A stretch of DNA of 64,000 nt from Glycera tridactyla (taxonomy: Eukaryota): NCBI GenBank assembly GCA_965644265.1, contig OZ286466.1, positions 19,902,001 through 19,966,000 on the forward strand. Direction: 5' to 3'. The position numbers and the translations under genes are program-made. Each line of letters begins with the position of its first letter. The stretch's first letter is position 1. The notes beneath the pieces were generated by a model. The model did no database searches. It saw nothing but the letters and a program-made list of their open reading frames with translations, and was not told where the DNA came from. This document shows positions 13,274 to 60,627 of this stretch, piece by piece.

Positions 13274-15979
13274 AATTTGACCATTGTTCCACGCAGACAG
13301 AATGCATCCTGTACAGATGATGGTGTTGTTGAGGGCAGATGTCTGAGGAACATATTGAGGACAAGGGCAGCAGGCCTCCAGTGTGATGGTCCCAGTAGGA
13401 TATGCTGATCAGGTGGCCCCTGGCGATGTATCGGCTGAATCGGCCAGCCCAGACTAGAATTGATTCATTCTAATATGAGGAACGTTTCCATGGCAACCAA
13501 CGATCCGTTGCTAGGATGTGATATCGAATGATGACATGACTCTGTGTCCAGGCTGTGGTTCGCAATCGATCGTCCCCCGATTGGCCCCTTTCCCTCTAAA
13601 TTCGAGTTGAGTATTTGGAGATTAATTTGTTAGAATTTTCACGATACTTGACTGTGATATAGTGAGCCGAGGAGTCAATTCTTGAGTGGGCCCAATGAGA
13701 ACGCCATCTCATGAATGAGATATATTCGGCCCAGTTAGGCAAACACATGTTGGACTGTATGTTATTCGGCGAGGAGTGAGCTCATAGGAATTTTAACCAC
13801 AAGTATAAGTTGCAAACTTTTCTATCTCTAAATCTCCCTCCCCCCTCATTGAGCCAGCCTGGCGCATGCAAAGCCTTCTGCAAAATTCGCTTACTAATTC
13901 TCATTCGCCATCATCGTAAATTTTTCGTTGGTGAAAATGACTCCTCCTGAGCGCTGTCATGAAAATTACATTGATGTAAAATAATTTTTTTTGTACCTGT
14001 ATGTGGCCAAACAATTTCATTCATCAAGGAAATGGAGTAAATGGGCAATTGAAGCTAATCAATCCACTGATCATTTCGTTTTTGGAATAGTGTTGTTGCT
14101 TCTGCAAAATAATCCCTCATTTTTGCATGAGTTGAACCTCGTGAGTTCATATGACAGGCTTTCAGGTTGGATATGATTCACGTGTCAGCGATAACCATCG
14201 TGACCAGCCCGTCCGAACCTGTCGGAAGGGAGCTTCACACAGCTCGTCAATAGTTACCTAGCCATATGTATGCGTTATTGAGGGACTAGCAACGAATCTC
14301 TTTTCGTGGTCAGACAAGAAGTGATGATTCCTGTAGATACAACCAACAATCACTTCTCCTGGTGAATATGATGTTTATTTCCCGTAGGATACAGCAATGT
14401 GCAGTAAAATCGTAAGGCGGCTACAACGAATAGGTCTTGAAATATTGCAAAAACGGGTGAACTCACATTTTGCCGTCGATATTCCTTTGTTACTGTTACT
14501 ATACACATCAGTGACTCTCAAATCACAGAAAGCCTGTCACATCATGCACCAACTGCACCCACCAAGACACCATACTGAGTAGAGAACCACTCACATGAAC
14601 AAAACATGTTTGAAATATTGTCCGAGTATATAGAGAGTACGTTCATAGAATCTCTCCTAAATCTTTGGAGGACAAATTTGTCAAGTCTTACTGTTTCTCC
14701 ATATGTGTTGCAATTTCCATGCACACTCAGGCTGAAAAATCCATCTCTGATATATACATTGGTATTCGTCTAGTGTTGGGAAAAATCATTAATTCAGATA
14801 AACATGTACAAGTATAAATGATGAACATAATAGTGATCATACGATAAACATTGTGTTTAGTGAATATATTTAAAGTAGCTGTTTCGTGTAAATTGATAGG
14901 AATGTTCGAAGTCACTGGTTCTATAGAGAACGTTGAAATGGAGAACAACTCAGTAAGTAGACTGCATCAGCGGCTTGGCGTGAGCGGCAGGGGAATCTTC
15001 CGGATTATATCATGCTATCAAGCTGAATAATGTGAATATAAACTTAGATATTCACATTATTGCTCAGAGACGACTCTGTCCAATGGAGAAAACCAGAGAT
15101 ACTTTCGTTAGAAAATATCTCCTTCGCAGCGACTATACAGTGTCCTGGCGGTGCAATCTCAACGAATTTCGATGCGCTGCTCAGTTTTGTTGCAGTCCTA
15201 TTTGCATATCGTCCTAGGTAGTATCCAATAGGACGGACGGACACCATCTTATGAATATGCAATAGGCTGCTGAAGCGCTGCGGCTGTTTTCTTTACGAAA
15301 GCCGGACTATAGTCTGTTCGTTCACATTTGTGAGTCACTTGACTACACGAAATATACACAACGTCTAGCCGATGAGCACCACCTAGACACTTCGTTTTTA
15401 CAGTTTTCGGGGAAGGCCAGGGGACTTCGAACCATACGTCTACACGAAGTCCCAACCGTCACCACAAATATATATCCATTGTTATCTTTGGTTATCAAGC
15501 AAGTTACCAATCAAATCACCAATGTGCACTTTACACCACATCACAATACTCAACTTGGTCGGGACATGCGTCGTTTCCAATCACTCAAACAGCGCAATAC
15601 AGCATTGTTTGCAGGAAGGCTTAGAGAAAGTTATTGGAAACTGAGTCGAAATGGGGAGACATTCAAATATAGAATCCCCGGTTCAATTAGAGGCAGAACT
15701 TGCGTAATATGTCAAGCAGAAATCGTTCAACATTGTTACCCAACTGTAGCGATGAGATCCATCAATCTTATCTTAGTCATTCCAATTAAGTATATGTACG
15801 TATTTTGTTCACGCCTTCCCACTTTTTCAAGCACGTATATTCAATTGCCTTGGGTGCAGTTTCAGACTATAATCCGGACCTGATATGTCTTCAATCCTGT
15901 TCTGTTGGAATCAGGTGTAGGAGAGTAACCATACGGAAAAAGTCTATCAGCAGGCGAAGTAAGGAGTTCAGGATCGAGA

Positions 15980-16111
15980 ATGACGTCTATGTATCGCCCG
16001 TTTGCCTGGAGGGTTTTCCTGCTAGTGGCCAGTGTGATCGTCATCTGCTATCTGTTCACCCTCATCACCTCTACCCCTCTGGCTCGCATGGTGCCTAATC
16101 TCTATGAAAAG
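15980..16111 (+). CDS. METTL24: METTL24-like gene 1, first coding exon (signal anchor) [44 protein letters not shown]
   Basis: 44 codons, hydrophobic stretch, strong phase-0 donor AAG|gtaagc; clearly homologous to the exon at 60499-60627. Confidence 0.85.
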
Positions 16112-19100
16112 GTAAGCTGATAATTGAGAATCACAACACAGGAAATCCATCACAACCCTAGGCCGGTAGAAATTTAGCCTGGTAGCAGCCAACGACGCTA
16201 GGTGGCGCAACTCAACTCCACCTGACGTCGTTGGCGGGTACCAGGCTAGTGGGAATTGCCCGGGAACTTGCCCAACATCACATTGGGGGAAGGCAACGCT
16301 TTTCATCACATTCATCATGTCCAATATCAGTCAACTCCAGTAAAAAATGTGGTCTTGTGATTGCCTCATCCGAGATGTCTAGTATGGGGAGATAAATGAT
16401 GAGGTGGTATTGTTCCATCACATCATTGATATCACTAGCGAAGTCATTTACATGGGCACTTTCTGAAGATGTTATGTTGATCACGGCATTTATGACTTGA
16501 TTTGGTTTGGTTTGTTGGTTGTTTGACGTCCTATAGTCAACATGTTGACTATATTGAGCACCCATACAGTGCAATTGGGTAGGACTATTCAAGATTCCTG
16601 CCTCTAGACCTTGACGGGAGGTGGAGATTTAAGGAATTTCAGATGCCAATCGACATGGTTTGTCGGGGTAACAACTTCTTGGGGGCTACGTACTTGAGCA
16701 TGTAGACATAGGAATTACAGTATTTTATCACATGCCAGTTAATGCATTCATTAACATGTCATTATTGTGAATTTATTATGACCTCTAGTCAGTTATATGT
16801 GTATTCTTTTCGACAGAACGGAGTTCCATCACCACAACCAGTCTCAAAGGTCGAGGTAAATTACTGTTTCATCCGTGTGCACTAACCTAATATACCTTGG
16901 TGGCTGAAGTGGATGTGATATGGAAACTTGTACTCATATATAGGTGATTCTCTCTGACATCCTGGCGAAGGTGGCTCGACCCTGGAAAGCCCAGGTCGAC
17001 CTGAACCGATGGCAGAGAATCCTTCAAGAGTTTTCTAACCTTCTATTTGTCGAGATGTCTCTGTAGCACGAACGCCACTGGCGAGATTCCGGGGAAATAT
17101 ATTTTTCAAAAATAAGTTACTGCGAAACTATGCAGATTTCAAAGAATCTGTTATATCGTTTGACTTGACAGGTACTCATTCTGCCCTCCCTTTCCCACAA
17201 TACGGGGATGCCTATTTACTTTCTTAGTCTCTCTCTCGCCCATTCTCTCTCTTTTCTTCTTCGCCCTATTACGTGACACTGAGGTGTAAGGTTGAATTCT
17301 GTCACGTCTTTATAGTTCCTCTGTCTTTCTGCCAGTCTGCCTATCTGATTGTCTGTCAGTTCTTCTCACACAAAGGTCACATCGATACCATCATGCGCTC
17401 ACGTTGTCTATGCATGGGGTAACATCTATTGCTTAGGTTGACATTTGTTCAAGAGAGGGAAAGAGAGAGCATGCGCGCGTGTGTGCGTGTGCATGAGCAG
17501 GTGCAGTATGTGANNNNNNNNNNNNNNNNNNNNNNNNNNNNNNNNNNNNNNNNNNNNNNNNNNNNNNNNNNNNNNNNNNNNNNNNNNNNNNNNNNNNNNN
17601 NNNNNNNNNNNNNNNNNNNNNNNNNNNNNNNNNNNNNNNNNNNNNNNNNNNNNNNNNNNNNNNNNNNNNNNNNNNNNNNNNNNNNNNNNNNNNNNNNNNN
17701 NNNNNNNNNNNNNNNNNNNNNNAGAAACAGTCATTCTTATGTCTTTCGACTGGTTTGTGTTGGAATTTGAATAAATTAAATACTAATAATAACAATGAAT
17801 ACTAACAGCCACTGAAGTACACAAAATTTGGTAGCAGCTGATTTAGTATGCTGCACAACACAATGTGCTACTACGATGGCAATTTACTATACATTCGACT
17901 AGAAACATTTTCTGGTGGTCTGACGTTGGATGCTATGATTATCTTGCATCGCCATGAAGTCTTGCCGTAATCTTCCCATATTCTGGGTAACTATTGTCAT
18001 TTTCTAATTGGACTGGAATATATGATAGATGCGTCATCCATCTTCTATTGTTTGTCAATATCTCATTCTGTTCTGCCAACGGACGTTCCTTATGACATTT
18101 TCATGTATAATCGGACATGTTCAAAGTTATTTTCATAACAATGGATAACATAAAAGATGGCATATAAAGAAAATATATAGAGAATATTGCCACCACAACA
18201 GCTGCAATTGTTTTGTTTCTTTGTGTCAACATTGAATCGCTCCATTTCTATTGAGTTCTTCTCTGCTATTTCAGAATCAAATAATTCTGATTTTGTGACA
18301 TTAGAATTATGGGAGCTTTCAGTGACCACATGTCAATGTCCATGTTTATGAGTCTATAAACGCATCATCAGATTACATTCTGCTTGAAATCCAGCAATTC
18401 TCCATCTTCGGCCATGTTGTCGTCGTCATCTGTGATCCATTCTTTTTCTGAAATACCCATACTGTGGTGATCTGTTCTCCATGTTCTGTTCAGGGAAAAG
18501 GAAAATGTGAAGTGTTATGTGAGATGTGAATATTTGTCTTTATTGGAACAGAGTGAAGTGCCGAAGATCATGCCAGTCGAAAAGGAGCAGGTAAATCGCT
18601 GAGTGAATATCCCTATATTGTGTGCATTATTGAAGTCTGTCAATTTCAATCGTGGCGGGTACCTTTTTACGCCCTAGCATCGCGAATTGGCGCCGAATTG
18701 AAACGAAACACGCTGACAAACATTGTTGCAATCTCCGGCGACTTGAATTGCAATCTCGGCGAGGTTCCTGTGTATATTTCGCCTCAAGCTCCAAAAATGT
18801 CTATTTCGTGCTAGTATCGCGGCAAGTGCGGCGGCCGCATCTCTCATGTTTTACATACAAATGATCGCCAATGATGCCGGAGGATTCGCCAAATAAATGC
18901 AATGAGATGATGGCGCATCATCTTCAAAAGCACACGGACTACCTGAAACCGGGTTCGATAATCGCCGGAAGACCTATACAACACACTCGTGCCATTAGAG
19001 CTCAGATCAGACGAAATACAGTCGAACCTGTCTACTCGATTTCACCCGCCTCCCTGGAAAGACAACATGTCCGCACACGAATGTCACCTGTATTGAGGAA

Positions 19101-22100
19101 ACACTTGTATATAAGTCCAATTCTCCGTAGAGAATGCATGCAAACGTGACAAATTCATTCATGAGATCGGCTTCCACATGGTTCCGAAAGCTGCACATAG
19201 TTTCGAAAATCGTCTTCTGCACACATTTTGACATCTGGCGACCGCCATGAGCCCCGTGGAAGCAGGTCGCTGATTGGTTGATTTCGCGGGGATTCGGGAT
19301 TCAGCCAATCTGGGATCGCGACATATATCTGTCGATTCTTCCTCATCTCCAGCTTCAAAGATGGTGATTGAACTAGCGAAACTGACAAAACTCTTCGTCA
19401 AATTTGACAATTATAATTTGTTTCCGCACCTTTAAGACTCAATCCGACACGAATATGTGCACATCAGCCCGCCCGAAAAAGATGTTTAACTTTGAGATTC
19501 ACCCGCCCGGGACGCTCGGGGGGCAATCTCTTCGCGCCCTGAATAGTGGTCTTCATAGGTGGGTGGTCTTTATAGAAAGGTCATTTTCTGTTAGAAATTC
19601 TATTACGGTCGCACTTCAGGGTGGTCTTCATTGAGAGGTTGTCTCTATAGATAGGTGGTCTTTAGAGCAGGTTCGACTGTATAGCAAATCATCGCATGAA
19701 ACGTACCCGCCACGTTTGGATTTGACAGAGTATACGGCTTATTCTTCTACCTTTGAGGCACACCTGGTGCTATGAGTGCTTCTCTTTGGTGGATATACAT
19801 ATTACAATACTGGGTACTAACACTAACTTTAGGTGGTGACGAATATATGACAGCTTCAGCAGTGAAACTTCAATCATAATTCATAAGTCATACAATTGGT
19901 AATAGTCCTATCAGTGTGATGTCACAGACAGAGCTGACTTCTTTAGTTAATGGCGTTTCAGTTCATCTGCCTACTCAGCCCTTACCGAGTAGAAGACTGT
20001 TGTCCCTACAGCCATCAACTATCATCCTCAATGGTATGTTTTGTAGTCAATGATAAATGTAACGAAAGTGAATGAAAAATTATTGCACTGTGATTTTACA
20101 GTAATTTGTAAGCATGACTTGGCAGTAAGTACTGATCGAGAGCAATTTCCTCACAAATATATTCTTCAAGTGGTGATATTGAATTCAGTGCATCCTTCTG
20201 ATGAAGGAGTGCTTAGCATGGGTCATCACTAACATCCGATCCTTCTAATATGATACTGATTAGAGTATGAAAGAAACAATACAGACAGTGATAAGGATGA
20301 AAACGTGGCATACTTTGTACCGGAAACATGAGAATACTGAATGTTGTGAAATCTGTATTTTTGTCTTGACTGACACATATTATATGCCAATGACCAAGCC
20401 AGTAGGAGAGGTGATGGTAACTCACATAGTGAAACAACCATATGCTTTGTACATGGTTTGGCTTATGCTGCTGTTCTTTGGGCATACATTGGGCTTGAAG
20501 CGCTTCTCCAGGGTGGATAGGGATATCTAGATACTAGGCACTGTGAGGGGATGAAGAATATTCACAACTTCGAAATGTTTCATGTCATGTTTGGAATTGA
20601 TTAGTCACAGTTAGAAATAGTCATCATGGTATGCCCTAACCAACACAACCTGTCGCAGAAGTTAGTTGATTTTCCAATCTACTTGATCTTTATCAAGAAG
20701 AAAGCTATTATCCATCATTTATTTACTCAGTCATCCTATAATATATGATTTGTAGTCTTCAAAAGGACCACCGAAAGTGGATTTTGATTTAACTACAATA
20801 TATTAGCATGACTCTAGATATTACAGATTAATAGATTCTAAACAATACCACAATACAGTACATTTTATGAGTATGGATATTGAATTATAAGCATTCATTC
20901 GGTGAAGAAGTACAGAGGGGGTGTCATGAATAGTATCCGATACTGCTGATATTATACTGATAGAAGTGGCAACACCAATCATGTCAGAATACTATCAAAT
21001 GAGAATCATCCTGAGTGTCATGTGAAATTTGTATTTTTGTCTTGATTGTAACAGAATGAAGTACCAAAGGCCAAGCCAGTCGATGAGGTAATAGTGAATC
21101 ATCACTCGGTGTGTCACCCAATATTGTGTACACAGTTTTGGCTTATACTCCTATCCCTATTGCATACACTGGGCTTGAAGTGCTTCTCCGTGGTGAATAT
21201 AGATCATTAGGCGGTCGGCACCAACGCTAGCTGTGGTAATGAAGCATACATGTATTTGACAACTTTATGGCGAATTGCAATCAAAATCCATGTGGTTTTC
21301 GACAGGTGAAGATACTCATTATATTATGCTGTTACTGACAGAGCCTATTGCATGAATTAATTGCTCATCAAAATAGAAGGCTGTGGTCCATCCATCCATC
21401 CATCCATCCACCCTTCCATTCATCCATCGATCAATCAATCAATCAATCAACTTCAATTACATTTCCGTAATCTTTATCAAGAGTGGCAAAACTGGATGAA
21501 CCATCAGTTCACTTTGATGTGGCCAGTTCGACAATAATTCATGAGTCAGTGATGATCCGACACGATGCCCTCATGTTGATATTCGTCTTGTATCATGGGA
21601 GCTGTCGCCGAGGTCAGGCATGTAGATGTTTGTACCGAAGAAAATAATGTGAAATCAAATTAAATCAAAGCCTAGGTTGTGAAACTCTATCTCATCTATC
21701 TCAAAATGTCCGCCAGACCTAGAATTATCGCGTTCCAAATTATCACTGAATAATGCTCAAGCTAAGCATTACTTCCACGTATCACAGTCAAACCTTTATT
21801 TCTCGACACTAGAAGACTTCCCGAATCAGAGTGAAACCTTGCAATGTGCAATATATGACACAACTTTCCACGGAGGTTTGATTATTTGCACAAATTAAGA
21901 TTATTCAGACAAATATGAGTCATATGCACGATAAGGTATCGAATGCCGATCGTGTGTATGGGATTCCTGTATGCACATGAAAGAACAGGAAATTTCCATG
22001 GGGACGGTTTCATCAAAGAGCTATAGAAGGTGGACTGGGGTGCAACATTGCAGTCGAATGATGTCGAAACTGCGGTCAATACTCTCCCCTATCCATTTAC

Positions 22101-25100
22101 TGGTGTCAGGAATAAAAATGCTAGACTCTGTCAAAGCCATATGGGGCGGGTACGTTTCAGGCGCTAACTTTGCCATTTCATGTCCGATTTCAGTTTTAAT
22201 GGCACGAACGAAATGTAAAGGTCTTCCGGCGATCATCGAATCTGTGTTCGGCTAGACTGCATGCTTCAGAAGACGGTTACACCATAATTTTATTGCATTT
22301 TTATGACGAATCTGTCGGCATTATCGTTTGTTCTTCCCTATCTGAAACAACGGAGATGCACCAGCCGCACCTGCCGCAAAACCAGCGTGAAATCGACATA
22401 TTTTGCGTTCTGATGTGAAATAAACAAGTGAACCTGGTCGTGATTACATTTCTAGTCGTCGGAGATGTGAGTAACGTCTGTGTGCAAGTGTCATTTCAAT
22501 CTGAAGCGAAGTCACGATGCTAGGGCGAAAAACGTACCCGCCATGATTAAGCTTGACAGACTCTACAATATGATCACCAGCCGTAGGTGACACTGAAATA
22601 TTCATCAGTTATTGATCACTGCGAATATTGATCCGATTGGAATAATATAGCCAATAATTAGGCAATGAAAACTGGAGCTCCGCTAGCTTAGGAAATCAAC
22701 GAACGAAGTGCTAGACGGTTGCACCAACCATGGCAATTCGATTTGGACTTCGATTTAACCCCAGGATGTCCGAAAATGGATATCTGAAATGAGTGACTCC
22801 TCCGCTTCTGGTTCAGACGACATAAAAATCACATCTTCAAGCTTTCAGCTCAAATATTGCACATATCTTCAACCTATCTATTGAAAAGTCGGCTTTTCCC
22901 AAATCATGGAAACATGTAATTATAACCGTGATTCAAAAAGATGGCCCGACCAATGACTTACAGGATTCTCAGGCCCATTCCACTATCATCTGACCCAGGG
23001 AAACGTCTTGAGTGTGTCATACACAAGCAGATGTATGAATATGTTCACGGCCCCAGTACCATGAATGAGGCCCGATTCGGATTCAGGAAGGCTCATTCCT
23101 CGGGCACGTGAGTCCTTGGATATATTTATCAGAAGACCTACAGGGGACCTGTCGGTGGGACGTTCTTCCTGGACCTGGAAAAAGTATTTGATACCGTGGA
23201 CCATGAAGGGCTTACTCAACAGCTGGCCCGTATTGGCTCAAGTCAGAAAAGTGTGCAAGCACTACATTTTCATACAGCATATATTATCATTCTCATACAA
23301 AGCCCTTTCATGTGGATTTGTGTCAGCCAGGACCCAGTCATACCAAGATTGAAATTTATTTCATACTCTCCCATGATATCCCATTTCAAACAGTACCCAT
23401 CTTTCCTTCTGGGTGCAGTACCCCACTGCGTGAAATGGGATGTAGTGCTACCATCTCTCTTGTCTATTGTGAGCTCATCCTCATGCACATCTTGTATCGT
23501 GAGACAATTGCTGACTCTTTTCACTTGACACCATCACCTCTATGATGCATATATCAGGTATGGTTTTCACCCTCTATTTTTGTATATCAATATTATATTG
23601 TAGTTTTGAAATATATATATATTATGACGGGCTACCGGTCTGTTGTAGTGTATGCTGCGAGGGGCGGTCGAAGGTACGGATCACCAAATTCGTCGCGTTC
23701 TCCTACGTTTCCTCTTCTTCAATATGCTTCAATAAAGTGGTGTGGAGTCTACCTCTTGTCTTCGTGTTTTCACTATGAACTACTAGTGCTAGAGTGTCAC
23801 TATAATTCACAAGAGTTCCTGTATGTGGGGGTAGAGTGTATACAAAGTATAACACAACTCGCTCAAATAGTGATGTATCAAGCAGGCTGTTAAGCTCTAC
23901 TCAGTGAGGTACTGGATCTTTGTGGAGTCGATGTCGTAGCCGTCTGTCTGTGGTCCGACCCCTTCCTTGCCCCTGGGTATAACGTCTGGTAGTGCCCGAA
24001 TTGCAGTACCCCGACTTCCTGATTTTCTGGAGAATTTATAGTAAAGTGAGGTATGCCGTTTCTAAGCATACCTCGGCCAATTCTGACGTATGTGTGGCAT
24101 GAGTCGTATTGGGGACTAAAAAGGTGTCCGATATGATCGGGAGGTGCATTCCTCACCGTCTGGGACCATTTTTGGGTTCCTGGGACCCGGCGGTGCCGAG
24201 ATATTGACCTACAAAACCTACGTCACTTGACTACGATAAATAGGTCAATTTTGACGTAGGACCGGCAATTTGGCTTATTCGATGCATTATATAGAATGTT
24301 CTTGACCAATTTCCAAGAAATCAGGTGGTTCTGGCGCTTGTAGCTCGTATGATAGCCGCTACTGCGCTTCGAACCTGGTACCCCCTCTAGGAAGTATTGG
24401 TCTATTAATATTTGCAGCATCAGACTGGCCATGGGCTAAGCCGCGCTCAGTCTTTTGCCCGCTAGCTTTCGTTCTAATCGGACGTATGTATGCTAGCTCT
24501 GCAGGATTCATATATATCAAGTGAGTTACTCCATGATATATGCTCCTGTTTTTAAGGATTTTAGCCCTCTGAAATAAAAAACAAAATGATGAAAAAATGA
24601 TAAAAAAGGAATAAAGGTTATCCCCAAATTGGTAAAATTATTTTGCTATTTTTGAGATCCTTCTTTCTATTCTTTCTCCTTCTTTAAAGAAGACTGCCTC
24701 AGCTGTCTCCATGTCCAATCGTATGGTCAAAGTCTCTGTCTACATGTGTACCTCCTTTTCGAAGCCTCTCAACCCGAGTTATCTATTTTGACAATAATAC
24801 AATATATATATGAATAAATATCATAAGTGACAATAAGTAACAATAAGCAACGATTACCCCAATCTGTGTTTCTGCATGTGTGTTATTTGGCATGGTGAAA
24901 TGTGATATGTGTGGGTATAATCGTACTTGTATATTCGAGACTTCCCCCAGGCTTTGCTTCCGAACTGATCTGACTAATAGCCAGTCGTTCGTACTAATTG
25001 TCATTGAAACTATCATCGTTACGAGCGGCTCGTGCCAATGTCTGTATTATGGCCTGCATATCAGGTTCCACGCGTTACCAGTCAAGCATATAATTGTAGC

Positions 25101-25520
25101 CGCGCCAGACTTGCCTGGCTTTCTTGACCGTCCGTAACATGATCGTTTCACTCAACGCCGGTTCACTAGTCTCTAGGCGTTGCTGAGATATTGACCTACA
25201 AAACCTACGTCACTTGACTACGATAAATAGGTCAATTTTGACGTAGGACCGGCAATTTGGCTTATTCAATGCCTTATATAGAATGTTCTTGACCAATTTC
25301 CAAGAAATCAGGTGGTTCTGGTGCTTGTAGCTCGTATGATAGCCGCTACTGCGCTTCGAACCTGGTACCCCCACTAGGAAGTATTGGTCTATTAATATTT
25401 GCAGCATCAGACTGGCCATGGGCTAAGCCGCGCTCAGTCTTTTGCCCGCTAGCTTTCGTTCTAATCGGACGTATGTATGCTAGCTCTGCAGGATTCATAT
25501 ATATCAAGTAAGTTACTCCA

Positions 25521-25562
<42 letters not shown>

Positions 25563-26296
25563 TGGAGTCACTAGCGGCTATTCATACAAGCTACAGGCGC
25601 CAGAACCGCCGGATTTCTTGGAAACTGGTCAAGAACAATCCATATAAGACATGGAATCGGCCAAATCGCCGATCCTACGTCAGAATTGACCTAATTATCG
25701 TAGGCTGATGACGTAGGTTTGTAGGTCAATATCTCGGCACCGCTGGGTCCCAGGAACCCAAAAATGGTCCAAGACGGTGAGGAATGTACCTTCCGATCAT
25801 ATCGGACTCCTTTTAAGTCACCAATGTGGCTCACGCCACGCATACGTCAGAATTGGCCGAGGAATGCTTAGAAACGGCATACCTCACTTTACTATAAAAT
25901 CTCCAGAAAATCGAGAAATCGGGGCACTGCAATACGGGCACTACCGGACGTTATCCCAGGGGCAAGGAAGGGACTGGACTACCGAACGGAGGGCTACGAC
26001 ATCGACATCCCCAAGATCTAGTACCTCACTTAGTAGAGCTTAACAGCCTGCTTGTCACAGCATTATTCGAGCGAGTTGTGTTATACTTCGTAGACCCTCT
26101 ACCCCCACACTCTAGAGCTTGTGTACAATATAGTGACATTCTATGGCTAGTGGTTCATAGTGAAAATACGGAAACACGAAGTGGACTCAACATCACTTTA
26201 ATAAGGGAACTATTGGTCGCAGAAGAACGCGATGAAATTTGGTGGTCCATACCTTCCACTGCCCCTCGCAGATACAATATAACACCAGAAGCCGTC

Positions 26297-26350
<54 letters not shown>

Positions 26351-29300
26351 ATGTTCAGAACCATAAAGGACATGGGATATAGCACATATAACATGCTATT
26401 TGACACGTATATTCTCCCGGTGGCCAATTATGGCGCGGCAGTGTGGGGCATGAAGGATTACCCAGGGCCCCAGGTACTACATAATAGAATAATCAGGTTC
26501 TACCTGGGTATTCACAGGTTCGCTCCTCTGGCAGCCACCCATACAGAAATGGATGCTATACCCATGGCGTTTCACAGATGGGTTGATATCTTACGATTCC
26601 ATAACAGGATACATCTGATGAAAAATCACAGGATCCCTAAAAAGATCCACATGTGGAACCAGTCACTAGGACACACTGGATGGATGGCTGATGTGCTTGC
26701 AATACACCAAGAACTGGATATGCCCTACGACCCCGAAGCACAAATCTGTCTCAACAATTTATATACACGTCTTTACTCAAAAGCTAGAGCAGATAGAATA
26801 GAAGAAGCACACGAAAAACCCAAGCTCCGTACATACGTAAAAATAAAAGACTTTGATAAACCACTAACCCTTGTTAGATCCAACATCACACGAAATCAAA
26901 GATCGATCATGGCCAAGCTCCTTTGTGGCATTTTACCGCTGGAGATTGAAACCGGGAGGTATGTGGGCAAAAAGTCAGAGGAGCGAATCTGTACTTTGTG
27001 TGATAATATGGTGGTTGAAGATGAAGTGCACTTCGTGTTGAAGTGCACGAGATTCACTGCATTAGAATCAGACTCATGGAAGACATGATACTACCTGATG
27101 ATTACGAAACCAAAGACGACTTTCAGAAACTAAGAATATTTGGACAAGCGAACAACATAGTCAAATTTGGGCGTATATTAGAAGAAATGTTTATGGAGAG
27201 ACGTGCCATACTTTTCTCAACATCGGGAGTACAATATAAATGAGTCTGATCTGAGCAATGCCATACTATCTATATATACCATCATTGACTTACACAATGA
27301 CCACACCGTAGCATGATATACCACAAATATATATTTTTTACAATGTTTTAGTATCCCAGATATATATACCCAGAGAACCACTTATAAACGCCCTTTTGTC
27401 CCAAGATATACTGGTCTCTTTTACCTGACCCACCCACCCCCTCCCCCTCTCTCTCTCTCTTCCACCCCTACCATAGTACCAAACATTATTTCAACTTATA
27501 CTTCATACCAAACACTATTTCACTTTATACCTCATACAGTTGCACATAAGCGTTATCATTACTTGTCAATCATTTTATACCCTTATATGCCTCCTATATA
27601 CACACTCAAACTATACTCGGAATGTCATCCTAGCTGGCAATCGTACTTTGTCCGTAATGAAAAACCTATAACAACATTTAACAACTAATAGAGGCCGTCA
27701 ACCCCCTCGTTCCCCCGAAACGATGTTCAGACCCCCCGACAATTCTGAACGTGGTTGGGAATGACCGAAGTATATATGTCACTAACCACACAAAATAATA
27801 CTATTAACACTTCATGTAACCCAATTAGGGGTTGCCGAGTCTTGTGGGCCCGTCTGGGGCCGGGGGTCAATTGTACGTACCGATATTTAATACTGCTTTC
27901 TTTGTATTTGACCTATGANNNNNNNNNNNNNNNNNNNNNNNNNNNNNNNNNNNNNNNNNNNNNNNNNNNNNNNNNNNNNNNNNNNNNNNNNNNNNNNNNN
28001 NNNNNNNNNNNNNNNNNNNNNNNNNNNNNNNNNNNNNNNNNNNNNNNNNNNNNACAACTTAACGTAATACCCATACCCTCAGAATATGTATCTCTGTTAT
28101 CTATTCTGTGTTTGCATAAGAATACAATATGACCATCCAGGCTCTCATGTGATTGCATATGCCATGTAAATATGTTTCAAACTTATGCAACATCATTTAC
28201 TTCATCTTTATCTTCATCTGATGTAAGACTCACCATTTCTCAGCTGTATATAATTACCTATCTTCCATCACTTCCTATCTGTGTGAAGGCACCCATACTT
28301 GGAAAGATTATCTGCACTTGCACTTATGGTAGGCAATGCAGCTCAAGTTCATGTTTTCACACCATTTCCTCACGCTTATTACACTCTTTGAGGGTGCGTG
28401 TTACAGCGCACAGCAGTATTTTTCAGCCCGCACCCTCTTGCTTTCAACAGAAAAAAACAAATATATATTCCCAGTGCTATCAATGAATATCTATACCTCG
28501 ATCATGCACAAATCCAATGGGTTTTGAAATGTGAATCTGGGCTGGGATAGCTGTGAAGAGGGAAATATTCCCAATACTTTGTAGACGTATGAATGTTGAT
28601 GTGTGCCCAGAATGATCACTTTCCAGAGGATGAGTGATCGATAATGCATATTGACTGTACAAATTCCCAAATACCATTGGCTCTCTGCTTCCCCAAACTG
28701 ATGTGATGAATGAAGTCTGTCGAGGCCAATCCCACTGATATGTTTTATTACATGACATGTGTAGCTAGTGTGTAATGAAGAGACAATATGCCGTGATGTC
28801 GCCTGAAGCTATAAACAGCTAGTATCACCCATTTGGTGATATTGGTCATGATCAACCACTCGCCCCGTGATGCGAGTCGGACCAATTCGGTGAATGGAAA
28901 CCACTGCAACTCACATTCATGTAAGGACCTGCCAGAAAGCGCATCCCCACTCAAGTTCAAGCAACTCATGAGAACACTTCTACGGTTGCAATATAGATGC
29001 ATGCACTAACACGAATACCCTTCTCTGGCACCAATGAGAGACAAATACATGACGGCAGATCATATTATGATGGCAGGTCTCTTTCTCAGTGGCATTTGTA
29101 TGTCATCGGGAGCCATGTGGCATTGTGTCAAATTTACAGAAATGGTGTTTGTCAATCATCAAGCTCACTTTCATCACGATTGTGGTCAAAGCAGGTTGTT
29201 CTTGGCCCCCGACCCCCCTCCCGACCGTTTTTATTTCTGTGCTTTGTGCAACATAGGATAACGAATTGATATGTGACATATATCCAATATGCCAGTGAAA

Positions 29301-32300
29301 TGTCATGTTTTTTAATCCATAAGTTGCATTGATGACCTATTTATAGGTGTAGTCCATGTTCGAAATGCTCTTCTTCACTTAGCATTTTGTGATTAGGGCA
29401 ATATTCTATGAGGTATGGAAGGTGTGTGTCCCGATACATTCCTTCGATAGATACTCATGGAACCTGATGGAACTGTTTCTTGCTATAGTGATTTCAGTTT
29501 GAAAGGTGCTAACATTCCACCGGTGCTAACAATGACTGATAAAACTGTCTCTCAAATGTTTTCCAGTGAATTCGTTTCGGCAATTTCTGAGAGACTGACC
29601 TTGTGGTGTAGGATACATTTTGTAGGCTATAGAAAATACATTCGGCTTTTCGTGGATGATGCTATAGTTATTGGTTGCTATACTTATTGTGTGCTATGGT
29701 TGACATATATACCACGAATAGCGCGAGCTACGGTTGAATATAAGGGTGTTGAATATAACTTGTCAGGACCACTGGTGCACACGGCTACGTCACAATTCGG
29801 AGTCACGTGACTACCCATTGTCTTCTCTACTGCCGACGCATTCCATTCAGCGTGATCGGCAGGCGGCTAAACTATCCGTAAAGTGATTCAATCCACATTC
29901 AACTTCTGATTGAATGTCATGAATTTCGGTTCAACACACACAAAATATATATTGATGGATTTTGCATGATCTGCCCTGTTCAACGAGACTACTTTCAAAT
30001 CCCTAGCTAATTCTGAGTGAAATTCTGTTTATTTGTTCATGTTCGTTATATTTTGCATCTCCAATATGTTCCATACAAGGAGTTTATGATGGGATAAATG
30101 ACATCGACAAATGGACTGAATTCCATTCAGGTTAGCTCACAGCCATCGATTTGCATGATAATTCGTGGTATATGAGCAAGAAACCATGGAGTGTTGTCAT
30201 GACGAATCATACACCACTCGGAGTGTATTGTCAGTATAATTCACTCGGCCTTAGGCCTCGTGAATTATACTGACAATACACACCTCGTGGTGTATAACTT
30301 GTCAGGACAACACCCCATGATTTCTTGCTATAATACCTGCTGATGATGACATCCATGCTGGTGTTGCATCAGGGAATCCTACAGCTGGGGGTTGAAGTGC
30401 ATTCAGCTTCGGTAGTTGGTGGGTTGTGGCAGAATTAGAAAGGGTATAAGGTGGATTATCATTCGATTTGTCTCATAGTATGTGTGGTCTGTCAAAAGCT
30501 TTACCGCTTTATTATGGTGACATAGGGCACATACTACCGTAACGTAATANNNNNNNNNNNNNNNNNNNNNNNNNNNNNNNNNNNNNNNNNNNNNNNNNNN
30601 NNNNNNNNNNNNNNNNNNNNNNNNNNNNNNNNNNNNNNNNNNNNNNNNNNNNNNNNNNNNNNNNNNNNNNNNNNNNNNNNNNNNNNNNNNNNNNNNNNNN
30701 NNNNNNNNNNNNNNNNNNNNNNNNNNNNNNNNNNNNNNNNNNNNNNNNNNNNNNNNNNNNNNNNNNNNAGGTGATTGCCTGAGACAGGGAAGCAATAATT
30801 CAGTGATATTTGTCTTTGTCTTGATTGTAACAGAGTGAAGTAGCAAAGGCCGAGCCAGTCAAAAAGGTAAATGTGAATCACTCAGTGGATCACCCCGCAT
30901 CGTGTACGTGATAATGGCATATACTGCTGTTCATTGGGCTCACATCGTTCTTAAAGTGCCTCTTCATGGTGAATATAGATAGCAGGATTCTAGGCACTAA
31001 CAATGGTAAAAGGGTAAGAAATAATTGACAACTAATGAAGTTATGCTTAGAAATCATTAGCCACTACAGTCAGGAAGAGTCATAGTAAAATGATGTTATG
31101 GACAGAGCTTGCTCGATAGATCAGTTGCTATGTATGATTTGTAATCGCTCGCAGCAGTGACAAAGGTAAGACAAATGAGTGTATTAGCGTGAGTGGGAAA
31201 TTTTCACAGCAGTTCATTACCGTAAGATCGAATGGATAATTTTGTCAGTGGTTGTACTGAATTCTGTGTATTTGGGAGATGGAAGGATGACTAGAGCTGG
31301 TCATTGATAACATTTCATTGCTGATATCATGCCAATTAGAGTGACGACATCAATCTTATGGGAGAAGATGATAGAAACAATTGTATGGACAAAGTGTGTC
31401 ATGGTTTGTACCAAGAAAATGAGAATGCTGAGTGTTATGTGAAATTATGATTCATGTTTTGATTGGCAGAGTAAAGTACAAAAGGCCGTGCCAGTCAAAG
31501 CGAAGGTAAATCACCAAGTGGATCACCCAATATTTTGTATATGGTATTGGCTAATGCTGCTTTTCTTCGATCACACAGTGAGCGGGGAGAATTTCTCTAG
31601 GGTACTAAGTACTAATGTTAACTGTTGGGCGGATATTCCAATTCAGTCCAGAAGGTAAAGTATGCGATTTGGGCTTATACTACACATTAGGCTGGAATGC
31701 TCCTCCGTGGTTGATATGGATATCGAGATGCATCACTCTGAATCCGACTGTGGGAAGATGAAGGCCAGTTGACAAGTTGCCTTAAGTTATCAGATAAGTT
31801 TATCAGATAAAACAAGTCATGATAGCATGTCATTATGGACAGAACCTTTTACGTGGATCATTCACCCAACCACGTAGAATGCGGTTACCCATCAGTCAAC
31901 TATTGATATTATTTGAAATACTGTACAGAAGTGACAAGATATAATGAAAAAGACGTCACCAATTCGTTAGCGATTCACTGTGAGTGAAGATACGAAGCCT
32001 CTTCAAGTACTTTTTATCGTTGGGAGTATTGCATCTTGAGCATTCCTCTGATAAAAGACTAACTATGATGGGTCGTTGATCTTATTCTATACTGTCGGTA
32101 TGATATCACTGAGAGGGACGAGAGGTGATGTGTGCAGTTTAACATAACATAACATAACATAATATAACATAAATTTTATTTACAATGCTCGACACAACAG
32201 ATTGGGGTCTATATCTTCTGCACGCGAGCGACGATATAGCTGAAACGAAAAAAATATTGACAGGTACTCCCAGATTGCACTGATTGATGTGTGGTGAATC

Positions 32301-32896
32301 TTCGCCTGCAATATTACACAAGTAAACATTCAGGCGCGTTAAGATAATTGACTCAAGACAAACATTCAATACAAATATTTACAATTTCAATTTTCATACA
32401 GGCTACTATCACATGGGGAAATTCAACATTACACGGTTCAAGTATTTGTAGGGTACAGTTGATAGTGGAAAAATATTTACAATTTCAATTTCACACAGAC
32501 TACTATCATATGGGGAAATTCAACATTACACAGCTCAAGTATTTGTAGGGTACAGTTGATAGTAGACAAAAGACGGACAGGAGGCGAGGATAGTATTGTG
32601 AGCATCAAGTTTCCTGTTTGAAGTACATGATGTTCCATGCCAGTCTAGAAGGTGATACAGTAGATAATGGTACTACTCCCGCAGCTAACACCATGCTTGC
32701 CTTTACAGCTTACTTTCACGTATGAGCTGGCCATTCTTCTTGTCTTATTCCGGAGTTAACAGAATCACCATCTCCTCTCTTGGTGCCTTTCTTTGTGTTC
32801 TTCATCTTTTTAGGCTTCTTGGCTTTTTCAGTATAACCTTCAGATTAGTGCCTGGGATCGGCAGGAAGATGCGGAGAGAGGATGAGACAGAGAGAG

Positions 32897-32956
<60 letters not shown>

Positions 32957-33954
32957 GTGGGGAGATCTCTCTCCATCAACCGGGAGGCAATCAGGCTTGA
33001 CGTGCTTCTTCATGATGAATATCAGTATTAAGATGCAACACACCACGAGGTGTGTCTGTATTGGGCGAAAAATTAAGAACTTCAGTTAAGTTACGTTCAG
33101 AGTTTATCAGTCACTACAGTCAGAAATAGTCATGATATGATGTTACGGACACCGCCTGCTGCGAAGAATCAGTTGCCCATCCAAGTGGTTTGAAGGGTGT
33201 TATCTATCAATCAATCAATCATCTTCAATTATAGGCTTTGTCATCAGCTCATCACTGTGTTTTTGTCAGTGGGTATACCGAATTCTGTGTATTGAGCAGA
33301 TGAAAGAATGATAAGCGTGTGCCATCGATAGCATTCTCGACGGCTGATATGATGCCGAATAAGACTGATGACTGCATCCCATGGAATGAGATGATGAAAG
33401 AAGGGTATAGAAGTGTGTCTCAGCTGACATCAAGATGAAGAGAGTGCTGAGTGTTATGTGAAATGGGTATTTTTGATCTGGTTGGCAGAGTAAAGTGCCA
33501 AAGGCAGTCAAAAAGGTAAATGTGAATAACTTAGTGAATCACCGAATGGTGTGTACACAGTATTGGCTGTTATTGGCCACTGGGCACACATCAGGCTGAA
33601 AGTGCTTTTCTGGGGTGAGTATAAACATTTGGATGCTTGGCACTAACACTGACTGTGGTAGATGAAGGATATTTAGTACAAACAGTGAGGTAAATCACTC
33701 AGTGAATCACNNNNNNNNNNNNNNNNNNNNNNNNNNNNNNNNNNNNNNNNNNNNNNNNNNNNNNNNNNNNNNNNNNNNNNNNNNNNNNNNNNNNNNNNNN
33801 NNNNNNNNNNNNNNNNNNNNNNNNNNNNNNNNNNNNNNNNNNNNNNNNNNNNNNNNNNNNNNNNNNNNNAATCAATTGCAACAATAGCAGCAGGTATTCA
33901 GTAGAATATTGATCTGCACCTTCCGCTGTCCTACACACTGACCTCATGCTCTCA

Positions 33955-33986
<32 letters not shown>

Positions 33987-36900
33987 CATTCACATGCTCG
34001 CATATGAAAACATCCCCACGGACCGGTATTGAATATGGCAATTATACATAGTCAGAAATTGTAACAGTGCTAGCAGGCTGTTCCGTTTGGCTGACAGAGA
34101 AAACGTTAGCCAGATCTCCCAACAAGTATTCTTTATCTCGATGTACGACAAAAATGAATGGATACCCACTCTCCGACACGAATCGTTAGTGACCGTTATG
34201 GTGTGGTCACACCGAGGTCGCTGAGTACAAAGTCAAAATAAAATCGCAGCAAACATCTCGCATTTCATGGATGGAATGTTTGATCATGGCGTTGTCGCTG
34301 AATATATGTACCTGACGTTGATTGACTTTGACTGGTTTTGAGTGACTTAGAATGTGAGTCAAAGTCAAGCTTGACTTTTTGACATGCAAAAAGTCAAAAT
34401 GTGGGCATTCAATGTCGAATCCGACCACGTTCGATGAATGACGCTGAATGACTTTGATATTGTCAATGACTTTGACACTGAATTCCAGGTCTCGTATTCA
34501 GTGTCATTCAATGTATCTGCCAGCGACATTCTTGAAGGAGTCGCTGAATGCCGCTGACAAGTTGGTAACCAAGGAAATTAGACACCGATCACTTGCAAAT
34601 CCATCAACTTCCATGTCAGTCAGTCAGTCAGTCAGTTAGTCAGTCAGTCAGTCAGTGAAGTCTAAGTCAGCCAGCCAGCCAGCTAGCCAGCCAGAGTAAA
34701 ATGACTGCCGCATCACCGTATATGTCGGGAGTCCTAGCAGTTTATGTGAAGACGGTACGCTGATGTATTGAATACTTTTGCCGTGAGAAAAAAAATTAAC
34801 CTAAACCCAACCTTTCACATGTCTACCCCAGGCTTGACCTGTCTACCTCCGGGATTTTTGGCGGCAATAATCAGCGCCGAAATCTGCTTGACTTTGAATG
34901 GTAATGACTGCTGCTGACCAGTGCCGCTGACAACCCACTTTCCTGCCATTATCATCGCACTTTCAACGTCTGTTTAATCAAGTACGCTGATATACCAAAC
35001 CTTGTTGCTGACATTAGAAGTCAATGTCCAGCATCCGGTTCGCTGACAATCCACTTTCTCAACCAATTTATTCCACCTTCAATGTCGGTGCAATCAAGCA
35101 CGCTGACATACAATGACCCAGTCACCGCCCTTCCAAGTCAATGGTCGGCGCACATTTTGACAACTCATATTTGCGTCAACGACCTCGACATTCAGCGACT
35201 ATTTGCACATTTTCGCGTAGACATTTTCGACTTTGTACTCAGCGACCTCATGGACAACCTGCAAGTACTTGACTGATGCCCATTTCCAACCCATTTTCTC
35301 AGACTATCTGACGTGTATCTAGCACGTTGTAATATGCATTTTGCTTTCTGTAATCCAGCGGCTTGAGGTCCTAAAATTTGGAATTCTCTACCAGTCGATG
35401 TTCGTTCGATCAAATCTATATCTAATTTCAAAGGGGTTGTTGAGGGGTTTTGAATGACGAGTGATGGGCCCAAATGATACGGATTATCAGATACAGTCTG
35501 CTGGGGGTGCTTATACAGCGTCTTTCATGTATTCTCTTCACTATTTATCCACCCTACTTTCTCCAATCTTGAATAGTTGGCACTAGAGAAGTGCATTGTT
35601 TGAAGTGCATTGACATCCTTTCTATACTATGTACCACTGATAGCATTTCCTGGATTTCAGCTCGCCACCTTGTACATTTTTCCCATGTTTATTTATTCAA
35701 GTTCATTGTACCTGAGAACATTATGGTATTGGAGACATTATTTCAAAACTATCTGCCTCAAAATCGGGAAGGGGCGATGGACTGCCCGCTGAAATAGTCA
35801 ATATCCGTGCCAAAGAATTGTCCTTCATCTGCACACATAGTTTCACCACGGGAAATGTCCCGACTCCATAGAGAAGAGCTAACATTGTTCCCTTGTACGA
35901 GGATGCTAGCTGCCCCATAGAGTTGAACTATAGACCGATAAGTTCGCTGAGTGCCAAAAAAATCGTAACAGAACTTGCATTGCTTGGTTTTCCAGTTATT
36001 CAACAGATCGACGTTGTCAAGTCAATGTAAAGAGTGTGTTGTCAAATGGAAGGTTTGTTAAGTGTGGCAAACCTTTAGGATCGATACTGGGTGCTCTTCT
36101 ATTTACTATATACGTAGATGATGAGCCTCTACGCAGAGGGTACCGCCAATCCACCACTCTTGTGTTAGATAGAGATCCAATCCATCTAAAACTCTAATCA
36201 GGAGAATCACTTGAACAAGTAAGCATATGGTCACGGACAAATAAACTGAGTCTGAATTCGAAAAAAAAACATGACTTTAGTATTCGGGACACATGTTCAT
36301 CTTCAGCGTAATATTTTTACAATAAAATTTGAAAATCAGAAAATAGAACAGGTATTCTCGTTCAAGTATTCCAGGGTCATTATAGATTGTCTACTAAGCT
36401 GTCCAAGGCAAGTCAAATATATGCGATCAAAACACAGTTTGGCGTACTTGGTAGACTCAGGGGTTTGTTAGGTAAGACCACATCCCTGATGCTATGCAAG
36501 ACACTCATCCCTCCTAGCATTGTTCATTGTCATATTGTCTATGACAGTCTGGGAGTGGCCGATTCAGAACAAAGCGACACGAATCATCACAAACAGTGCT
36601 AGAGATACAAGTAGTTGACAGATACATGTGAATTTGAATCTGCCTTACTTGGACTCTCGTAGACGATATTGCTCTCTTGTTCATGTGAATATGATATCAG
36701 TCGGGGATAACCCCTCTCAGTACACTCAATTATGTAGACAACAAGTTGTTCGGTCGCATTGAGAAGTGGCTTCAGTAAGGTGCCTTTGTAGGGAGATTTT
36801 TACTGTTGAAAATACTTATCACGGTTATGGCTGAGGGTGGGCTCTCTCAGAAGGATTTCAAATCAAGGTTCCTGAGCAGATTTGACCGTACTATCTGTTA

Positions 36901-59870: not shown

Positions 59871-60498
59871 TCTGTTCTGCAAGTATACAAGGGATGTGAC
59901 GGCACTCCCTAATATCGACCACAATGTTATGATTATGGCATTTTGGCATATGACTCGATGGACTCACAAAAAAGCTATTCGCACGAAAAATGCACTGGTA
60001 TGAGTGGTATACTCAACAAAGTATAGTGTGAATGTGCAATTCGAAGACGACTCGCGGCGCATGGCCATAATTCCCGCACAATCTGACATGCGATATCTCC
60101 CAGAAAGACGCATGTAAATTCACATCCTGGCTGCATGCGGACCCTTCTGACTCCATCGAACACATCATAAACTCATTAAACACATGCACTCCATGCTATC
60201 CTTAATCATTTCACAAAATATTGAGAACTGTCATCTCATCAATATGAAACACATTATGTTTATGTTAGCATGGGGTGATTATCAGATGAGAGGATCGTCA
60301 CAGTTCTAAAGAGAACTTGTGAGTTGTGTATGATTGTTCCCAATGTAGTTGACATTTATATGTTTCGCTTGATCTAGCACCGTTTGTTTCTATGAGGAAA
60401 TAGCGTTGGGGGCAGTGTTTGGGAGTGGTGAACCAACGTGGCAGACTCCGAAAAGACGTCGGTACAACTCAAACGTTGGAGCATCCGAAACTATCAAG

Positions 60499-60627
60499 AT
60501 GACGTCCATATTTCGCCCATTGGCGTGGAAAGTTCCCCTGCTGGTGTCGGTCATAATCATCATCTGCTGCTTCCTCACCTATATTACGCCAACTTCACTG
60601 GATGACATCATGCCAAGAATCCACAAG
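60499..60627 (+). CDS. First coding exon (signal anchor) of a tandem METTL24-like paralog, MTSIFRPLAWKVPLLVSVIIIICCFLTYITPTSLDDIMPRIHK; the gene probably continues beyond the window
   Basis: Colinear homology to 15980-16111 (MTSxxRPxAWxVxLLV...IC) and the same phase-0 donor AAG|gtgagt. Confidence 0.82.

Follow-up and report, generated by a model that had tools for sequence, protein, structure and literature searches.

A tandem array of frame-symmetric microexons that probably encodes a PEVK-like stalk in a METTL24-like gene of Glycera tridactyla

Six segments of 27 to 39 nucleotides lie between an exon for a membrane anchor and the exons of a methyltransferase domain in the stretch of DNA analyzed here (64 kb, referred to as the window). 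The locus raises the question of whether these segments are exons of one gene, how they came to stand in a row, and whether they are used in varying combinations. We consider it likely that they are coding microexons, that the gene to which they belong has 13 exons and encodes a METTL24-like protein with a type II membrane anchor, and that their array grew by tandem duplication of a unit.

Reading splice sites and open reading frames across the 64-kb window gave an uninterrupted reading frame of 1188 nt (395 aa) on the plus strand, composed of exon 1 (E1), six microexons (m1 to m6) and exons 8 to 13 (E8 to E13), with canonical AG and GT dinucleotides at all introns. The encoded protein runs from a type II signal anchor through a 69-residue PEVK-like stalk and a Cys-containing stem to a Methyltransf_22 (METTL24-like) domain. 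E1 (15980-16111, plus strand), recognized by its open frame and its donor AAG/GTAAGC, contains the start codon, a short cytosolic tail and a signal anchor of 19-22 residues. The highest 19-residue Kyte-Doolittle window covers residues 12-30 with a mean of 2.73 and is preceded by Arg6 and Arg11, and a type II topology of the METTL24-like protein is predicted from this strong N-terminal anchor. E8 (37087-37283, plus strand) encodes a stem without repeats that carries Cys residues and an N-X-S site; similarity to relatives begins only near its 3' end. Exons 9-13 (39300-39431, 40230-40304, 40971-41109, 42889-43011 and, with the stop codon, 43597-43779, all on the plus strand) encode the catalytic domain and were delimited by tblastn with proteins P0001 and P0005, by splice sites and by the open frame; tblastn matched them in collinear order.

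The piece encoded by exon 9 alone scores 26.7 bits against Pfam PF13383, for which the gathering cut-off is 22.4 bits, and all relatives that we found carry this domain. The catalytic part is 51% identical to P0001 over 249 aa and 55% identical to P0128 over 214 aa. The PF13383 match, the collinear homology and the N-terminal anchor together place the predicted protein among METTL24-like (Methyltransf_22) proteins, and the domain predicts methyltransferase activity for the gene product. The first-pass annotation had put the stalk between a signal anchor and a METTL24-like catalytic domain, a placement upheld by the hydropathy value, the Pfam match and the 51-55% identity to relatives.

METTL24 / Methyltransf_22 proteins of molluscs, annelids, crustaceans and tunicates have in common an N-terminal anchor, a variable stem and the motifs GDGGW-C and YSFGI-x-DWSFD. 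In METTL24-like relatives the DGGW motif stands 70-160 residues from the N-terminus, behind a non-repetitive stem, whereas in the present gene it stands at about 200 residues and is preceded by an array of K/P/V repeats. The relative from Solemya velum (P0032) has its own, unrelated stem repeat of 3 x 19 residues; therefore, stem repeats arise independently in the METTL24-like family. Searches brought up no orthologue carrying the array, and P0001 and P0128 come from transcripts of other species, whose products have an anchor and a stem free of repeats. A phmmer search of 1.8 billion representatives with the last exon returned no annotated protein of the present gene (top match 53% identity), a word-indexed search with P0001 nothing closer to it, and a profile built from P0001 and the exons of the window gave P0128 and P0129 as best matches, at 50-62% identity, and none from the present genome. 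The open frame of E1 (15929-16111) had no match in protein collections, exact searches of JGI metagenome contigs for the tail of E1 and for the head of E8 gave zero matches, and a search of the ESM Atlas with the last exon gave only noise. Rfam at gathering thresholds reported no family between 15 and 45 kb, and we found nothing in the literature on microexon stalks in METTL24.

The six microexons are all on the plus strand: m1 at 16817-16855 and m2 at 18552-18590 (39 nt and 13 residues each), m3 at 21055-21087 and m4 at 30834-30866 (33 nt and 11 residues each), m5 at 31470-31505 (36 nt, 12 residues) and m6 at 33489-33515 (27 nt, SKVPKAVKK). Each is preceded by a pyrimidine-rich stretch ending in CAG and followed by a donor of the form AG/GTAA(A/T), is of phase 0-0 and divisible by three, is free of stops and begins with A. 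Thus, the acceptors, GTAA donors and phase claimed for the six segments in the first-pass annotation all hold at these positions, and the six peptides translate from the plus strand. Downstream of m3, m4 and m6 there is a second in-frame donor at a distance of 6 nt. The microexons make up 207 of the 1188 coding nucleotides (17% of the coding sequence). A common pattern, S/N-x-V-P-K-A-x-P-V-x-K, is found in m2, m4, m5 and m6 with AG, GT and frame all kept, and the valine codon at position 3 varies synonymously between copies (GTG, GTA, GTT). Pro, Glu, Val and Lys account for a share of 0.62-0.78 of each microexon and 0.70 of the whole 69-residue stalk. In exon order the net charge rises monotonically from 0/-1 near the membrane to +4 at the distal end. 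Such a stalk would be a disordered, extended spacer keeping a lumenal or extracellular catalytic domain off the membrane.

The microexons are paralogous, as had been proposed before. An nhmmer profile matched m2 to m6 at E-values of 1e-45 to 2e-57 and m1 weakly (E 0.006), and the homology reaches into the introns, where whole units of 600-840 nt align at 60-65% identity. A mere chance pattern of splice-like letters was rejected, since the paralogy runs through whole units. These alignments show an origin of the array by tandem duplication of whole exon-plus-intron units of about 0.65-0.7 kb. A seventh unit (20322-20515, plus strand; nhmmer E 2e-33) was recognized from its sequence and alignment, with the equivalent of the exon at about 20377-20411; its acceptor has changed from AG to AT, 1 nt has been lost and a TGA stands in frame, so this copy is dead. 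A partial copy of the donor-side flank (33688-33710, plus strand; E 0.016) ends at an assembly gap (33711-33869) and may mark where another unit begins. The earlier count of six overlooked the dead and the partial copy; since gaps adjoin repeat units, it is to be taken as a lower bound or as uncertain. A transposon with 31-nt terminal inverted repeats (18631-19835) has inserted into the unit that separates m2 from the dead copy, which explains the wider spacing there.

The history read from these comparisons begins with a single exon of phase 0-0, about 33 nt long, that was copied in tandem with its intron (about 0.65-0.7 kb) at least six times, m1 being the oldest and most diverged of the copies. 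Later transposon insertions lengthened some introns, and one copy died. Length changes remained in frame: m6 lost 6 nt, a codon indel occurred in m5, and in m2 and m5 the donor probably shifted by 6 nt between two tandem GT sites. The six exons, when included, add 69 residues (70% Pro, Glu, Val or Lys) as a putatively disordered spacer.

RNA-derived contigs from four RNA-like runs (X1, X3, X5 and X7, bearing two organism labels) were compared with positions 15500-21400 of the window, a comparison in which holes in depth prove nothing and contigs drop variants. Contigs of all four runs cover E1, from 15908 or 15953 to 16107 or 16111. Elsewhere in this region, depth in the four runs is restricted to the m1 bin, the m3 bin and repeats, with zero in the other intron bins; the dead copy has zero depth in all four. 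The m1 bin has depth in X3 and X5 and none in X1 and X7. The m3 bin (21016-21212) has depths of 0.56 in X1 and 0.71 in X3, zero in the adjoining bins, and none in X5 and X7. One contig of X5, 198 nt long, matches E1 over 157 nt; its other 41 letters fall outside E1, and it ends at the m1 donor. The depth of 2.29 in the m1 bin of this run equals 11 x 41 / 197, which places the 41 letters on 16815-16855, that is, on m1 and two ambiguous AG letters. The joint between E1 and m1 is thus deduced from bin-depth arithmetic; the table of joints, swamped by the transposon, did not list it. The transposon itself has very high contig depth at 90-95% likeness, and because it starts at 18631, next to m2, the depth of m2 is unreadable. 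The 3' end of the gene is covered by RNA runs, and E1 and the 3' exon are present in the same runs. Therefore, m1 and m3 are present in RNA and the introns around them are silent. The transcript presumably includes m2 and m4 to m6 as well.

The case for exons rests on paralogy and RNA rather than on the motif pattern, which is common by itself: the same 21 kb contain 49 stop-free AG...GT(A/G)A segments of 21-45 nt. It could be argued that only some copies, such as m1 and m3, are exons, and that the others are intronic relics of the tandem repeat which are still open by recent common descent. RNA support is limited to m1 and m3, one copy is demonstrably dead, so that decay does occur, and five of the six microexons are open in frame +1 as well. 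In a simulation of neutral retention of open frame and splice sites, p was about 0.003 when a star tree was assumed and 0.04-0.14 for three or four independent lineages; neutral retention is thus only modestly unlikely, with p from 0.003 to 0.14 by the independence assumed, and cannot be neglected for copies with a common history. However, the RNA comparison spanned 15500-21400, and m4 to m6, like E8, lie outside that region. The flanks are about 35% diverged, so the duplicates are old, and still m2, m4, m5 and m6 keep AG, GT, frame and residue pattern. Identity between live copies is 0.67-0.91 in the exons versus 0.45-0.77 in the flanks, while in the dead copy conservation of the exon does not exceed that of the flanks, and exon indels are all multiples of three, compared with about one third of 32 flank indels. 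We regard the reading of the remaining copies as relics as distinctly unlikely. Another concern is the assembly. Tandem repeats are a common cause of assembly gaps, and four gaps fall within the array or next to it (17514-17722, 27919-28053, 30550-30768 and 33711-33869), one ending 65 nt upstream of m4 and one cutting the partial unit at 33711, so the number or order of units could be wrong if a tandem repeat was collapsed, expanded or mis-scaffolded around them. All four gaps are intronic and no exon touches one, and the reading frame is therefore independent of gap length, but the gaps may hide extra copies or errors of scaffold order. An artefact of this kind seems quite improbable: the copies differ by 30-40%, too much for an assembler to confuse them, all have the same orientation, their order yields the monotonic charge gradient, and E1 and m1 are contiguous in RNA by the deduced joint.

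If the six segments are coding microexons, they could also be cassette exons, skipped in varying combinations to give stalks that differ in length and charge. This is the tuning model of the first-pass annotation, under which independent skipping would allow up to 64 isoforms. Every microexon is symmetric, so skipping any of them, or any subset, preserves the frame. Contigs of a de Bruijn graph end at branch points, and the contigs here end at exon ends: that of X3 at the last base of E1 and that of X5 at the last base of m1. The contig of X7 ends at E1 plus one unplaced letter; this should not be the G of the intron, which the aligner would have placed, and the microexons all begin with A. 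Depth at m1 in X3 and X5 only, and at m3 in X1 and X3 only, among four runs, as well as the tandem in-frame donors after m3, m4 and m6, point in the same direction. However, no skipping joint was seen in the RNA contigs, depth is just 3-11, so that contigs may end where coverage breaks off or where pre-mRNA branches, and the limits of the contig comparison stated above apply to the holes as well. Some alternative use of the microexons is plausible but unproven, and we hold the cassette reading to be possible though doubtful. The further proposal that combinatorial use, possibly with the tandem donors, produces graded stalks of 0-69 residues or more, acidic near the membrane and basic distally, and that these would determine how far a lumenal or ecto-methyltransferase reaches or how it is sorted, we consider unlikely.

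The array had been likened to titin PEVK exons and schistosome micro-exon genes, which is apt as an analogy but not as family membership, given the methyltransferase host and microexons of 207 out of 1188 nt. In the PEVK region of titin one short repeat is encoded per symmetric exon, exons have been duplicated in tandem, and alternative splicing is heavy. The present gene resembles it in that every repeat has an in-frame exon to itself, growth was by tandem duplication, mobile elements lie in the introns and the product is a presumed disordered spacer. Unlike titin, with about 100 such exons of mostly about 28 residues, it has 6 exons of 9-13 residues, its host is a membrane-anchored methyltransferase and not a sarcomeric spring, and there is no sequence homology to titin. 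All six microexons, at 0.62-0.78, lie above the Pro, Glu, Val and Lys ratio of 0.54 per exon used by PEVK_Finder (PMC6469411). Schistosome micro-exon genes have longer flanking exons, with a signal sequence in the 5' exon, around symmetric microexons of up to 36 nt, so that exon skipping is frame-safe (PMC4671649). Here too a 5' exon with a signal anchor and longer exons flank a run of symmetric microexons (six of six). In contrast, the coding region of micro-exon genes is mostly microexons and their products are small and secreted (about 7-10 kDa), whereas here microexons form 17% of the coding sequence of a 395-aa enzyme with six ordinary exons downstream; two of the present microexons are 39 nt long, and the exons are clear paralogues of one another. 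Neuronal SRRM4/eMIC microexons are likewise very short and frame-preserving, but they are single conserved inserts in folded interfaces and not tandem paralogues encoding a low-complexity linker. Membership of this type was rejected: the UGC motif (TGC) is missing from the last 25 nt upstream of all six acceptors.

The locus is a new instance of the principle known from titin PEVK exons and schistosome micro-exon genes. It shows, cleanly and in a form that can be dated, how a disordered spacer is built, with a unit copied in tandem, the copies frame-neutral, one of them dead and the others drifted from acidic to basic. Exons this short are usually missed by automatic gene finders, and therefore gene models of the METTL24-like family and of the present genome probably under-report such stalks. 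If the alternative use is true, splicing would determine how long the stem of a type II membrane enzyme is, which is unusual, and the role of stem length would become directly testable.

The six microexon peptides proposed by the first-pass annotation translate exactly from plus-strand positions 16817-16855, 18552-18590, 21055-21087, 30834-30866, 31470-31505 and 33489-33515 (m1 to m6; 39, 39, 33, 33, 36 and 27 nt), and each microexon carries the splice signals ascribed to it, a pyrimidine-rich tract with a terminal CAG upstream and an AG/GTAA donor downstream (AG/GTAAAT, except in m3, where it is GTAATA). When the 13-exon ORF was rebuilt, all six proved to be phase 0-0 in the frame set by exon 1, and therefore omission of any one of them preserves the frame. 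Exon 1 (15980-16111, plus strand) contains the ATG start, a strongly hydrophobic stretch at residues 12-30 (best 19-residue Kyte-Doolittle window mean 2.73) and the donor AAG/GTAAGC. Exons 8 to 13 (37087-37283, 39300-39431, 40230-40304, 40971-41109, 42889-43011 and 43597-43779, all plus strand) were rebuilt with the aid of two relatives from the representative protein search. AG/GT is present at the boundaries of all 13 exons, and the spliced ORF has 1188 nt (395 aa). A (GGAT)n microsatellite of ~130 copies (37313-37841) starts 30 nt past the exon 8 donor.

The splice-motif pattern by itself is unremarkable: across the same 21 kb, there are 49 stop-free AG...GT(A/G)A segments with lengths of 21-45 nt, and frame +1 is also open in 5 of the 6 microexons. 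Paralogy is what stands out. The homology claimed among the microexons holds, with a profile of the repeated unit (microexon plus its intron) matching m2-m6 at E-values of 1e-45 to 2e-57 and m1 at 0.006, and the likeness begins ~60 nt before each microexon and continues for ~110 nt after it. Whole units align (19878-20677 with 20595-21372, and 30950-31552 with 32996-33568; identity 60-65%); therefore the array is a tandem repeat of exon plus intron with a period of ~0.65-0.7 kb. Longer spacings between units come from insertions, for example a 1.2 kb element at 18631-19835. Tandem GT hexamers (GTAAAT GTGAAT) are present in m3, m4 and m6; in m2 and m5 the first hexamer would have turned coding and the second would now serve as the donor, keeping the flank in register. 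Such a donor shift is a plausible but not unique account of the length change in m2 and m5: it fits the unit alignment, and other readings are possible.

A seventh copy at 20322-20515 (profile E-value 2e-33), overlooked by the first-pass annotation, is dead, with an AT acceptor instead of AG, a 1-nt deletion and an in-frame TGA. Its exon (~20377-20411) is conserved no better than its own flanks, and it is a useful internal control for the live microexons, where identity is 0.67-0.91 in exons versus 0.45-0.77 in flanks. All exon length changes are indeed multiples of three, compared with about one third of 32 flank indels. The identity contrast and the indel lengths suggest that the live copies are under constraint. 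In a neutral-retention simulation at flank-level divergence (p-distance 0.35), the chance of a neutral copy staying intact was 0.23; one failed copy or fewer has p of 0.003 with six independent lineages and 0.04-0.14 with three or four. These statistics are modest, and sequence alone gives no proof of exons.

Among RNA-like sequencing runs, X1, X3 and X4 (organism label A) and X5 and X7 (organism label B) contain sequence words from exon 1 as well as from the 3' exon; X15 and X16 (label B) were listed in the exon 1 search only. RNA contigs of X1, X3, X5 and X7 were aligned to 15500-21400, with m4-m6 and exon 8 outside this range. All four runs have coverage of exon 1 but zero depth before the start of the gene, in every repeat-free intron bin and in the dead copy, and therefore the data behave as spliced RNA, not DNA. 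One X5 contig (198 nt, depth 11) aligns with 157 letters to 15953-16109, and its other 41 letters fall elsewhere. The mean depth of the m1 bin in X5 is 2.29, which equals 11 x 41 / 197; hence these 41 letters comprise the 39 nt of m1 and two ambiguous AG letters. The GT-AG joint implied in X5 connects 16111 with 16817; it is a deduction from bin depth rather than a listed row because transposon joints filled the joint table. The m1 bin also has depth in X3 (0.44). For the m3 bin, depth is 0.56 in X1 and 0.71 in X3, with adjoining bins at zero. Cross-mapping from m4 was excluded as a source of the m3 depth, as ~7 of 33 positions differ and the threshold was 90%. The m2 bin depth is dominated by the transposon starting at 18631. 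As exons, m1 and m3 are supported by RNA, and the other four are probable exons based on paralogy and preserved structure. The individual in the window differs from both organism labels at 15941 (A in the window, G in X1, X3 and X7) and at 16003 (T in the window, C in all four runs; synonymous).

Four assembly gaps (17514-17722, 27919-28053, 30550-30768 and 33711-33869) are all intronic and adjoin no exon. Each microexon is whole on contiguous sequence, and therefore the reading frame is independent of gap length. One gap (30550-30768) ends 65 nt upstream of m4, and a donor-side flank fragment at 33688-33710 runs directly into the gap at 33711; further units may lie within gaps, or the scaffold order may be wrong. 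RNA confirms contiguity only for the step from exon 1 to m1, which spans no gap.

Contig ends bear on alternative use of the microexons. An X3 contig ends on the final base of exon 1, the X5 contig on that of m1, and an X7 contig one unplaced letter past exon 1; this letter is probably not intronic, because the aligner would have placed an intron G, and the first base of all six microexons is A. It is plausible that these ends are branch points from alternative splicing, as they match exon boundaries in three independent runs and de Bruijn assemblers stop so at branches. However, depths are only 3-11, pre-mRNA branches or coverage loss could also end contigs, and the alignment method itself cautions that holes in coverage are no proof. 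No skipping joints were seen in the aligned contigs of X1, X3, X5 and X7 across 15500-21400. Some alternative use of the microexons is plausible, and tuning of the stalk through 64 isoforms by skipping may serve as a candidate model.

The host enzyme is, as proposed, a member of the METTL24-like/Methyltransf_22 family: the product of exons 9-13 shares 51-55% identity with METTL24-like proteins of marine metatranscriptomes and ~35-45% with family members from molluscs, annelids, crustaceans and tunicates, and the Methyltransf_22 match of exon 9 by itself exceeds the Pfam gathering score. Relatives likewise consist of an anchor, a variable stem and the domain; the stem in them is shorter and lacks repeats, and therefore the microexon array is lineage-specific. 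The six microexons encode 69 residues, 70% of them P/E/V/K, with net charges from the membrane outward of 0, -1, -1, +1, +4 and +4. Between the anchor and a stem with Cys and an N-glycosylation site, these residues would form a disordered, extended spacer, and the stalk interpretation is reasonable. The stem of a Solemya velum METTL24-like protein (P0032, residues ~15-75) has a 19-residue repeat in three copies (VPYNPVPPNETLAAM...) unrelated to the K/P/V repeat of the array; stem repeats seem to have independent origins within the family. In a JGI metatranscriptome contig (L001:3-1129, with protein P0128), anchor and stem (gene 3-461) and catalytic domain (gene 488-1129) lie in different frames, an apparent frameshift or assembly error splitting one METTL24-like transcript.

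Several other elements were observed in the window. Intron 1 contains a near-perfect hairpin (16174-16249, plus strand; arms 16177-16197 and 16226-16246; MFE -60.3 kcal/mol and z -5.8 for 16155-16265), with RNA-contig depth of 12-48 in its bin versus 3-11 for the host exon. It has no Rfam family at gathering score; a miRNA precursor and a foldback element are both candidate identities. The ~1.2 kb element at 18631-19835 has 31-nt terminal inverted repeats and partial copies at 22122-22562 (minus strand), 51009-51292 and 63169-63495; its RNA-contig depth reaches ~29,000 at 90-95% likeness, and therefore it represents a transcribed family of DNA transposons or MITEs that is very abundant. Reverse-transcriptase-like ORF fragments (35716-36200, NYRPISSLS motif) between m6 and exon 8 are probably a decayed retroelement. 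A tandem paralogue has its exon 1 (MTSIFRPLAWKV..., donor AAG/GTGAGT) at 60497-60625, ~17 kb past the stop of the gene, and a candidate 21-nt AG...GT microexon (EQKDVKT) at 62170-62190, 1.5 kb within intron 1; the remainder of this paralogue lies beyond the end of the window.

The array works like the titin PEVK region, where each symmetric exon encodes a single PEVK-rich repeat, growth is by tandem duplication and introns contain mobile elements (PMC6469411), and like schistosome micro-exon genes, in which symmetric microexons lie between long flanking exons and skipping is frame-safe (PMC4671649); this METTL24-like gene is a member of neither family. An eMIC-type neuronal microexon was rejected, as the UGC motif is absent. 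A literature search found no paper on such a microexon array in the METTL24-like/Methyltransf_22 family. The original observation is confirmed and extended, and the array adds a neat new example of an evolutionary mechanism that is already known.
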